This document shows, one piece after another, positions 58,973 to 60,112 of a stretch of 64,000 bases of DNA; position 1 is the first letter of the stretch; each line of letters begins with the position of its first letter. The stretch covers positions 256,850 through 320,849 of the forward strand of contig NIVC01001124.1 of the NCBI GenBank assembly GCA_002269645.1, given 5' to 3'. The notes beneath the pieces were generated by a model. It was not told the origin of the DNA. It saw only the letters and a program-made list of their open reading frames with translations, and did no database searches. The position numbers were made by a program, and so were the translations under genes. This DNA is from Macrostomum lignano (lineage: Eukaryota).

Positions 58973-60112
58973 TATCTATTTCATGGCAGTCTTCTGACCA
59001 TGTCAGGCGACTGTCAGGCCAACTTTTTTCATCGAATTCCCCCGCAACACCACAAACGTGGCCGCCGATTCAACTTGACCTTCCGCTGGACTCACGAAGA
59101 TCCCAACACCGGTGCCACCGGGGCTTCCCTGGCCCCATCTGCACCCAGTGCCACCAAGACAGCCACTCCCAACACCGCAGTCCCTCTGACTGCAAGCATG
59201 GCACCAGTCGATCTCGACGAGAGCGCCCAATCTGCCGAACATCGTAGGATCCCAGAGATCGTCTGCTCCAACAACGACACCACGACAGCCAGCACGATCG
59301 CAGCATCTAGCAATGAGCCCACGGCAAGCACGAGCACGGAGACCAACGCCGACTCGGTAGTGGACGGCGGCGCGACGACCATCGGGGACGTGGCAGCGAG
59401 CGCCGATGCGACGATCAGCAACGACCCCTCAGCGGCTGCGGTTGCGGCTTCGGACGGCAATCCGGCGGCAGGCGGAACCACCGAAGTCGCCTCACCTGAG
59501 AACGGCTGTACGTCGGCAGCTGACGACCTCTTTGTGACCCCGCCTCTTCCACGGGTGGGACTGCCTGCTTCACCTGCCAAACGCCGCTTACCATCGCCGG
59601 ACTCTGAAGACTCCCCTGGTGGTCCGGAACGCCACAGGCCGCATCTGAATGACTCACCCAGCACCTTTGAGCAACCTGTTTCGCTCATCATCAGCAGGGA
59701 CTGCCGGAACCTGGTACTCTGCCCAAAGCCTTTCGAGGGCCTCAAACTGCCGGCAATTACAGAGGTACATGAGTACTCACTGTCAGCCTTACCATCTCTA
59801 CTGAGGTCGGCTGCCCTGCGGAACCGGCAATGCGCTCAGTCAACGGTGCTGGTCCTGCCGGACGAGCTGCTCAGCACAGACCACTGGCGAGAGTCGCTCT
59901 CTGAGGCTATCGATCTACTGAGAGCAGACAGTCTGACACGTAAGATCCTTCTCGTTCCGCCCTTTGCCAGCGGTGAAGAATTGACTCAATCTCTGAGTAA
60001 GAAACTCTCACCTATTACTCTTATTGCCTCTCCTCCTCTTAAACCAATTGTATCCTTCTCAGCGCCGGACTTTATACTGGCGCTGGCTTCCTGGCTGAGA
60101 ACTTTAAACTAG
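58973..60112 (+). CDS. PLE ORF1, 5'-truncated: AlkB-like dioxygenase C-terminal half, T/A/S-rich linker, alpha/beta C-terminal domain
   Basis: YLFHGSLLTMSGDCQANFFHRIPPQHHKRGRRFNLTFRW resembles the ALKBH2/3 C-terminal signature; 380 codons uninterrupted. Confidence 0.72.
   Translation, partial: YLFHGSLLTMSGDCQANFFHRIPPQHHKRGRRFNLTFRWTHEDPNTGATGASLAPSAPSATKTATPNTAVPLTASMAPVDLDESAQSAEHRRIPEIVCSNNDTTTASTIAASSNEPTASTSTETNADSVVDGGATTIGDVAASADATISNDPSAAAVAASDGNPAAGGTTEVASPENGCTSAADDLFVTPPLPRVGLPASPAKRRLPSPDSEDSPGGPERHRPHLNDSPSTFEQPVSLIISRDCRNLVLCPKPFEGLKLPAITEVHEYSLSALPSLLRSAALRNRQCAQSTVLVLPDELLSTDHWRESLSEAIDLLRADSLTRKILLVPPFASGEELTQSLSKKLSPITLIASPPLKPIVSFSAPDFILALASWLRTLN
60103..60109 (+). promoter_or_regulatory. 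Candidate -1 ribosomal frameshift heptamer T TTA AAC
   Basis: In phase with ORF1 (ACT TTA AAC TAG); the -1 frame is the RT frame, open from 60043. Confidence 0.65.

Follow-up and report, generated by a model that had tools for sequence, protein, structure and literature searches.

An ALKBH3-like dioxygenase domain in the first open reading frame of a group of Penelope-like retroelements, with a probable, decayed member in Macrostomum lignano

Towards the end of a 64,000-nucleotide stretch of the Macrostomum lignano genome (contig NIVC01001124.1; hereafter the window, whose own numbering is used throughout), the interval 58400-62553 is very probably a decayed, 5'-truncated, endonuclease-bearing Penelope-like retrotransposon (Penelope-like element, PLE) with two open reading frames (ORFs). 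Its ORF1 retains the end of an AlkB-type dioxygenase domain, and related elements encode the complete domain directly upstream of the reverse transcriptase (RT). Tentatively, these sequences can be read as those of an animal PLE clade that built an ALKBH3-type demethylase into its gag-position protein, in which the esterase has decayed, that may use this enzyme to strip 1-methyladenine (m1A), 3-methylcytosine (m3C) and possibly N6-methyladenine (m6A) from its own RNA or cDNA, and that may obtain its RT as a fusion protein through -1 frameshifting. The copy in the window is a relic that no longer functions; the locus is of interest for the family that it reveals.

The sequence-only reading of the window had singled out a 380-codon ORF at 58973-60112, beginning with what it took to be the C-terminal signature of an ALKBH2/ALKBH3-type enzyme, and the translation is identical to the sequence that it quoted. 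The frame encodes 379 residues before a stop at 60110-60112; it is actually open from 58769 (447 codons), because it reads through a (CT)65 microsatellite. The translated order is an AlkB end (YLFHGSLLTMSGDCQANFFHRIPPQHHKRGRRFNLTFRW), a T/A/S/P-rich low-complexity linker (59099-59647, with P/S/T-rich counterparts in the related elements L001, L002, L004 and L006), an alpha/beta-looking C-terminal domain of ~150 amino acids (aa; 59648-60109) and the stop, which sits 10 nucleotides (nt) within the PLE RT/GIY-YIG reading frame. The AlkB end comprises the C-terminal ~40 residues of an ALKBH3-like domain (58973-59098) and matches the Pfam family 2OG-FeII_Oxy_2 (PF13532; E=2.4e-5). Since only the final quarter of the domain remains (profile positions 151-194 of 194), the match reaches 25.1 bits and stays short of the curated cut-off of 31.2 bits. 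Both the distal Fe-binding His (FHGS) and the Arg motif for 2-oxoglutarate (RFNLTFR) fall within the fragment; the latter aligns to RVNLTFR of human ALKBH3. The HxD half, already reported as missing from this copy, was not found by tblastn anywhere in the 64-kb window, and the iron triad is incomplete here.

Related elements were defined as contigs encoding the closest RT relatives of the window. Those with AlkB are L001 (Logan SRR19430222), L002/L003 (SRR31628392/425), L004 (GCA_029980145.1) and L006 (ERR14788467), and they come from four different samples. In L001, L002, L004 and L006, whose RTs are 47-56% identical to that of the window, a + strand frame of 529-1078 codons lies directly upstream of the PLE RT and encodes, in order, a Pro-rich N-terminus, a helical domain, a complete AlkB domain, an S/T/P linker and a C-terminal domain of ~150 aa. 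The helical domain has the motif LLDKLLRS.HH...F.PAF, common to the AlkB relatives and to the M. lignano protein model P0241 (described below). The four AlkB domains score 86-112 bits in Pfam, above the cut-off, and the suggestion that a PLE family, not a single copy, has an AlkB ORF is borne out: the profile match is partial in the window and full in P0241 and the four relatives, which carry the ORF upstream of their RT. The motifs WH[AS]D[DN]E, N.Y and R.N.TFR are intact in P0241, L001, L002, L004 and L006. The window, L001 and L006 retain the distal His, and the full HxD...H triad with its Arg motif, which the earlier reading had proposed to look for in other copies, occurs in L001 and L006. 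Across five lineages, HxD, N.Y and R.N.TFR are kept at 34-52% overall identity.

The sole close protein among 5.8 billion is P0001 (UniRef A0A1I8GH21), a M. lignano 'Fe2OG dioxygenase domain-containing protein' that shares 85 residues with the window ORF1 at 99% identity. Its cluster mate P0241 (UniParc UPI0007A14736), a model of 1309 aa, is also 99% identical to the window ORF1; it has the helical region, then a full AlkB domain (Pfam 6.1e-19, 69.4 bits, WHADDE), and shares with the window both the linker and the C-terminal domain, as well as the final ...WLRTLN before the stop. P0241 indicates that another M. lignano locus has the HxD half. Both models jump ~10-20 residues precisely at the position of the window (CT)n, with an acceptor ('ggcag/t') directly after an in-frame YLFHGS. 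A real intron with the acceptor predicted for P0001 was considered and rejected, as the in-frame YLFHGS matches the conserved L-x-H-G strand of the relatives. Since the skipped strand is the distal Fe-binding His strand in those relatives, the gap is read as a gene-prediction work-around for the interruption. P0241 looks chimeric, with ~680 unrelated N-terminal residues and two predicted 'introns' within an ORF that is continuous in the window. Neither P0001 nor the window ORF had a record in assemblies when looked up as an exact protein. The public M. lignano 'Fe2OG dioxygenase' models are pieces of a transposon ORF1 rather than genes of the host.

When the whole of ORF1 was used as a homology query, low-complexity words dominated and P0001 was the only protein retrieved; rerun with the linker removed, the search returned only AlkB matches, mostly to bacterial ALKBH3-like proteins, and none to the C-terminal domain. 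The best solved relative of the element AlkB is human ALKBH3 (1e-28, 103 bits, ~40% identity; PDB 2iuw, 8jnr), with ALKBH2 far behind (1e-13), which narrows the earlier ALKBH2/ALKBH3-type assignment to ALKBH3-like; no ALKBH5 or FTO chain is found among the solved-structure matches at E <= 0.001. The element AlkB domains match each other better than they match ALKBH3 or the bacterial ALKBH3-like proteins, and in a neighbour-joining (NJ) tree four of them form a clade (bootstrap 76), with the M. lignano sequence as the next branch. In an NJ tree of the RT and endonuclease (RT-EN), the five AlkB elements (window, L001, L002, L004 and L006) are monophyletic in 100% of 50 bootstraps, with the window basal within the clade, and the shape of the AlkB tree matches. 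Because the AlkB-bearing RTs are monophyletic and the AlkB tree mirrors the RT tree, the simplest reading is a single acquisition of AlkB in the ancestor of the sub-clade, which would then have been inherited together with the RT.

The RT-tree sister group of the AlkB clade consists of L005/L007, L008 and L011, while L010, with the same type of ORF1, falls on a more distant branch. In L005, L007, L008, L010 and L011, ORF1 has the same helical domain and linker without AlkB, and ends in an intact C-terminal SGNH esterase with the blocks GDSN, GAN, GINN and D.IHW. This SGNH domain of the sister elements gives weak but consistent Lipase_GDSL_2 matches (17-27 bits), and in the PDB its profile matches 4c1b best (2.2e-5), the ORF1p esterase of ZfL2-1, an L2 long interspersed nuclear element (LINE) of zebrafish. 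Positions 1-10459 of L008 (ENA ERZ25068511) form a head-to-tail tandem array of 4570-bp units; every unit encodes an ORF1 of 477 aa that starts with ATG (helical plus intact SGNH) and an RT-EN ORF of 779 aa, and L008 is a clean example of an esterase-type two-ORF PLE.

At the same ORF1 position in the AlkB clade, the SGNH catalytic blocks are missing. The window C-terminal domain is without the Ser-Gly-Asn-His set, having LIISRDCRN and APDFILA at the candidate positions; it has no Pfam match, and an exhaustive HMMER search found 0 homologs in 1.84 billion representative proteins. When five degenerate C-terminal domains were compared with intact SGNH profiles by hhalign, the probability was 0.2-0.3%, which is not significant, and pairwise phmmer of the window domain against SGNH gave E=0.002-0.08 at Z=1, that is, for a database of one. 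A single-sequence AlphaFold2 (AF2) model of the domain is of low confidence (predicted local distance difference test, pLDDT, 51.5), with a beta/alpha pattern and no Foldseek match in the PDB at E<=0.001. The earlier suggestion of a degenerate SGNH-like domain therefore stands as regards position, at which the sister elements have an intact SGNH; the sequence, profile and fold tests of the window domain gave no significant result. A degenerate SGNH is plausible on the basis of ORF1 position and size only, and ORF1 seems to have shifted in function from esterase to AlkB.

The window ORF1 ends in ...ACT TTA AAC TAG and contains, at 60103-60109, the heptamer T_TTA_AAC, of X_XXY_YYZ form in the ORF1 frame; heptamer and TAG together (60103-60112) constitute a putative -1 frameshift site. 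In the -1 frame the heptamer reads TTT AAA CTA... (FKLADY...), the start of the RT protein, and the RT frame, open from 60043, overlaps the ORF1 stop. A zero-frame heptamer with the RT in the -1 frame is found in 10 of 10 elements (window, L001, L002, L004-L008, L010 and L011), the only variant being T_TTA_AAT in L011, and the ORF1 stop lies 0-7 codons past the heptamer across these ten. In a DNA alignment of six junctions (window, L001, L002, L004, L005 and L006), no block longer than 2 bases is invariant except TTTAAACT. The first Met of the RT frame, tabulated for eight elements, lies 67-242 codons in, past the conserved NLHP/DKG motifs. The window RT frame has no ATG before codon 171; for L011 the check covered just the TTG at which the called gene starts. 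The 'M' of the called proteins P0095 (L010) and P0009 (L011) is encoded by TTG. Taking these together with P0002 (L002) and P0007 (L005/L007 family), the called start is either non-ATG or in a frame without an ATG that early, and the overlapping ORF1 was missed or called separately in L002, L010, L011 and the L005/L007 family. Many other listed 'single-ORF' PLE proteins start shortly before the FKL motif, and two-ORF PLEs may be under-recognised. The junctions suggest that ORF2 is probably translated as an ORF1-ORF2 fusion by -1 frameshifting, in a gag-pol-like manner that would give ORF1p in excess together with an ORF1-RT-EN fusion.

The remainder of the window element, which lies on the + strand throughout, agrees with its earlier assignment to the PLEs, since the RT and the GIY-YIG endonuclease (EN) are both of PLE type. 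The PLE N-terminal motifs and the RT core occupy 60103-61527 in frame 1, which reads FKLADY...NILNLHP...LLDKGLNFIP and then the RT core (Pfam RVT_1, 4.1e-6). This RT has 1538 PLE homologs, the best of which are proteins of 700-780 aa with PF28514, PF26215 and GIY-YIG (PF01541), and it is 47-51% identical to the RTs of L001 and L006 by tblastn. Two frameshifts, near 61520 (into frame 3) and near 61752 (into frame 2), break the gene, leaving three collinear RT-EN pieces in frames 1, 3 and 2 (tblastn): after the RT core follow the RT thumb and linker in frame 3 (61518-61754; tblastn and translation) and the Cys-rich linker and GIY-YIG endonuclease in frame 2 (61754-62299, stop 62297-62299). The frame-2 translation, IIYGISCNQC...FYVGMT...NQHRS, aligns collinearly with the L001 and L006 endonucleases at 39-43% identity; the frameshifted fragment has no Pfam match by itself. 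By eye, the Cys-rich linker, a candidate for the Zn-finger-like CX2-5CxxC motif that Neptune/Nematis-type PLEs have between RT and EN, spans the frameshift near 61752, with CGSSRAN ending the frame-3 piece and KCCTH opening the frame-2 piece, the relatives having CGSARCKCC in their RT-EN linker.

The 5' direct repeat mentioned in the sequence-only reading is real: in a blastn self-match, 58400-58853 and 62112-62553 are 92.5% identical over 453 nt, in the manner of a pseudo-long terminal repeat (pseudo-LTR), and both arms stop at the same base (...GAAAAGCCTCT) in a pairwise alignment. The upstream arm is a partial copy of the 3' end of the element, with the last ~60 codons of GIY-YIG and the 3' untranslated region (UTR); the EN C-terminus of a relative matches 58399-58611 by tblastn. 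The downstream arm closes the main copy, whose 3' UTR and 3' end occupy 62300-62553 (blastn and pairwise alignment). Upstream tail and main copy form a normal PLE partial-tandem 'pseudo-LTR'. At their junction lies the (CT)65 microsatellite (58848-58977; Tandem Repeats Finder, period 2, 65 copies), which stands in for the AlkB loop immediately before the L-x-H-G strand, and the tail (...GCCTCT) could have been joined to an internal (CT)n by template switching at CT microhomology. From an ATG within the upstream tail, a chance reading frame of 426 aa (58832-60112) extends through the microsatellite, read as (SL)n, into the AlkB fragment. Neither the N-terminal three quarters of AlkB nor anything 5' of them was found in the 64-kb window by tblastn with P0001 and P0241. 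The copy in the window is dead: it is truncated inside AlkB at (CT)65 and carries the two RT-EN frameshifts.

No hammerhead ribozyme was detected in 58300-62700, either as an Rfam match at E<=5 or as a CUGAnGA...GAAA motif by regular expression, and an Rfam search of five related loci found none even at relaxed E-values. By regular expression, a CUGAnGA...GAAAC core occurs upstream of ORF1 in L001 (at 1711), L004 (44) and L006 (875); the 5' region in which these relatives carry it is missing from the window copy. Visual inspection gave a helix-I complement for L001, L006 and L009, and in L009 the flanks at 453 and 6960 (GTGAA/TTCAC) are complementary. L009, a contig with a more distant PLE (P0013), has three CTGATGA...GAAAC cores, at 453, 6960 and 8012 (+). 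L001, a full-length AlkB element, has a (TCAG)n microsatellite at either end (3-91 and 7430-7477), and its long 5' region contains four or five 92-bp tandem repeats (285-742). The window element lies between two (CT)n arrays (58848-58977 and 63587-63707), in line with the insertion bias of PLEs towards microsatellites (PMC8557442).

The targets of ALKBH3 are m1A and m3C in single-stranded RNA and DNA; both modifications block Watson-Crick pairing and reverse transcriptases. In the mechanism proposed for the AlkB clade, ORF1p, in the gag position, would hold the AlkB domain on the element RNA or ribonucleoprotein (RNP). By analogy with ALKBH3, the domain might oxidatively remove m1A and m3C from element RNA or cDNA, a role that can be put forward as a tentative first choice, and the removal of this RT-blocking methylation would permit the synthesis of full-length cDNA. 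ORF2 (RT and GIY-YIG), without a start codon of its own, would be supplied as the ORF1-ORF2 fusion at U_UUA_AAC.

Several observations weigh against this proposal. The trees are simple NJ trees only. An uninterrupted AlkB domain is not seen in M. lignano, as the window lacks the N-terminal three quarters and P0001 and P0241 skip the distal-His strand. The distal His is replaced by Pro in L002 (TPGSLL) and by Ala in L004 (GAGSLL), with HxD and RxNxTFR kept; some lineages or copies may therefore be catalytically dead, and the replacements may represent either copy-specific decay or a loss of activity at the level of the lineage. No significant stimulatory structure was detected downstream of the heptamer when 71 nt were folded at six loci (z-scores of -1.1 to +0.4 versus shuffles); small hairpins 10-16 nt past the heptamer at four of the six loci are no better than shuffles, the tool used being one that predicts no pseudoknots. 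Finally, the proteins of this PLE group also conserve FKL (TTT-AAA-CTN) as an N-terminal motif, so part of the conservation of the heptamer could be at the protein level.

The main alternative to the removal of m1A and m3C is that AlkB would act as an m6A eraser against epitranscriptomic silencing by the host. This seems unlikely, given that the closest solved relative is ALKBH3 (103 bits), whose substrates are generally known to be m1A and m3C in single-stranded DNA and RNA, and that ALKBH5 and FTO chains are lacking among the matches at E <= 0.001; it draws on the demethylation of m6A in vitro by the AlkB of an orchid Ty3/Gypsy element (PMC9289625) and on the reported regulation of L1 retrotransposition by m6A (PMC7873242). 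It is improbable, too, that AlkB is a catalytically dead relic or a purely structural or RNA-binding module kept for RNP formation. The His replacements in L002 (TPGS) and L004 (GAGS), the interruption of the M. lignano copies at the distal-His strand and the loss of catalytic blocks from the adjoining esterase-position domain in the same clade would all fit such a role, but each locus is a single, possibly mutated, copy, HxD, N.Y and R.N.TFR are conserved in all five lineages despite their divergence, the triad is full in L001 and L006, and Pfam scores of 86-112 bits are typical of active family members.

As regards the junction, there is only a small chance that ORF2 is made without frameshifting, whether by non-AUG initiation, by termination-reinitiation or from spliced or edited RNA, with TTTAAAC kept only for LN in ORF1 and FKL in the RT. 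The lack of a significant hairpin past the heptamer and the recurrence of FKL near the predicted N-terminus of many PLE proteins in the group are compatible with this, and intron retention is known for PLEs (Craig et al. 2021, PMC8557442). Against it, the X_XXY_YYZ form is exact in the ORF1 frame of all ten elements and is preserved by the sole change (C to T in L011), the synonymous options TTC, AAG and TTG are never used in the heptamer, and no AUG lies close to the ORF1 stop for reinitiation; moreover, the Fig. 1 legend of Craig et al. 2021 describes a PLE ORF1 as separable by a frameshift with a pseudoknot (PMC8557442).

The join between the upstream tail and AlkB at (CT)65 might instead be an assembly error that conceals a full ORF1 at the true locus. 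Long dinucleotide arrays are frequent points of misassembly, and the P0241 locus has the AlkB N-terminal half upstream of what seems to be the same interruption, with 99% identity downstream. Partial tandem copies and 5' truncation are, however, usual for PLEs (PMC8557442), and the 7.5% difference between the repeat arms is that expected of genuinely separate copies, making such an error rather improbable. A one-off chimera, in which a PLE inserted beside the final exon of a host ALKBH2/3 gene or picked it up and the AlkB fragment is unrelated to the element, is scarcely credible: the window does have only the AlkB C-terminal quarter, after a microsatellite and an unrelated PLE tail, and PF13532 is precomputed in 0 of 120 listed RT homolog proteins (because AlkB is encoded in a separate ORF), but in other samples four diverged elements have the same helical-AlkB-linker-C-domain ORF directly before their RT, all share the junction of ORF1 stop, heptamer and RT, and the AlkB-bearing RTs form one clade, so that this explanation would stand only if the contigs of the relatives were assembly chimeras and is otherwise refuted. 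A host ALKBH gene with further exons upstream in the window was also considered, and was rejected as there was no tblastn match with P0001 or P0241.

Elsewhere in the window, a 5S rRNA gene is present at 4963-5060 (+; Rfam RF00001, 44.8 bits, above the gathering score), and a chance tblastn match at 33253-33522 (+) marks a frame that resembles a myosin motor-domain exon and probably belongs to a host gene. A 29-bp tandem repeat (23 copies, 93% matches) occupies 56084-56711; three of its units give a period of 87 nt, or 29 codons, and an open repeat ORF of 258 aa extends over 55993-56769. A separate 85-bp repeat (4.4 copies) lies at 55032-55406. The PLE is flanked by two diverged LINE fragments with RNase H (56842-58032 and 62554-63416), with a Pfam RNase_H match of 3.6e-7 for 57269-57676. 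These fragments share only an 85-nt stretch, at 79% identity, and the right one, from 62554, is 5'-truncated within RNase H and adjoins the 3' end of the PLE exactly. The second CT array, (CT)61 at 63587-63707, is similar in length to (CT)65; the PLE copy and the LINE fragment lie between both arrays, which may mark the original target microsatellite.

Parts of this architecture have precedents. The statement in the sequence-only reading that canonical PLEs encode one RT plus GIY-YIG ORF was too strong, as Schneider et al. 2013 (PMC3905857) had already pointed out esterase-type ORF1s among Repbase PLEs, and GDSL ORFs are known in Athena PLEs/Terminons (PMC3905857, PMC5408684); an esterase ORF1 in PLEs is therefore not new. 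Loss of catalytic residues is likewise on record for some retroelement GDSL derivatives, namely in Athena-L (PMC5408684), and, given the Fig. 1 legend cited above, frameshifting in PLEs as such is not new. A full-text literature search found no paper linking AlkB or a dioxygenase to PLEs, and none on PLEs of this kind in M. lignano. Neither the element class nor this type of domain capture is new; their combination is new in animals.

If the proposal is correct, these elements would be the first animal retrotransposons with an enzyme that repairs nucleic acids or erases epitranscriptomic marks, and would represent the third independent capture of AlkB by an RNA-templated selfish element, convergent with plant RNA viruses and an orchid LTR element. 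New enzymatic domains are rarely fixed by transposable elements and, when fixed, point to a host pressure or a replication bottleneck. That AlkB has been kept with the RT lineage at ~50% RT identity suggests that methylation of the template RNA or cDNA may limit retrotransposition in these animals, and M. lignano, a laboratory flatworm with transgenesis tools, offers a testable case. The coding range of PLEs would also be extended to a two-ORF, gag-pol-like organisation with a conserved slippery site.

Among known systems, the closest are the endonuclease-bearing PLEs of the Neptune-like, esterase-ORF1 type, which have the same RT N-terminal motifs, GIY-YIG with a Cys-rich linker, pseudo-LTR or partial-tandem arrangement, microsatellite flanks and (as in the relatives) hammerhead motifs; compared with these, the AlkB elements add an ALKBH3-like domain between the helical domain and the esterase-position domain, from which the esterase blocks are gone. 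The sister PLE SGNH domain is alike in profile and gag position to the coiled-coil plus SGNH ORF1p of CR1/L2/RTEX LINEs (ZfL2-1, 4c1b), whereas LINE ORF1ps are without AlkB and the window C-terminal domain is without detectable sequence or fold similarity to SGNH. Human ALKBH3 has the same HxD...H...RxNxTFR motifs as the element domain, but is a stand-alone host repair enzyme, and the element domains cluster together instead. Plant RNA viruses such as Flexiviridae carry AlkB in their replicase polyproteins, where it is thought to clean RNA methylation. They too are selfish RNA-templated replicons with AlkB; in them, however, RNA is replicated by an RNA-dependent viral system and AlkB resides in the replicase, whereas the PLE is a reverse-transcribing nuclear element with AlkB in a gag-position protein. 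The AlkB of Ty3/Gypsy elements in the orchid Phalaenopsis (Alvarado-Marchena et al. 2022, PMC9289625) is likewise a 2-oxoglutarate dioxygenase fixed in a retrotransposon and proposed to act on the element's own RNA, but it belongs to the LTR class and to a plant, is of a plant RNA-demethylase-like subtype and is encoded in a separate extra ORF; its activity has been shown, whereas the PLE domain is known from its sequence.

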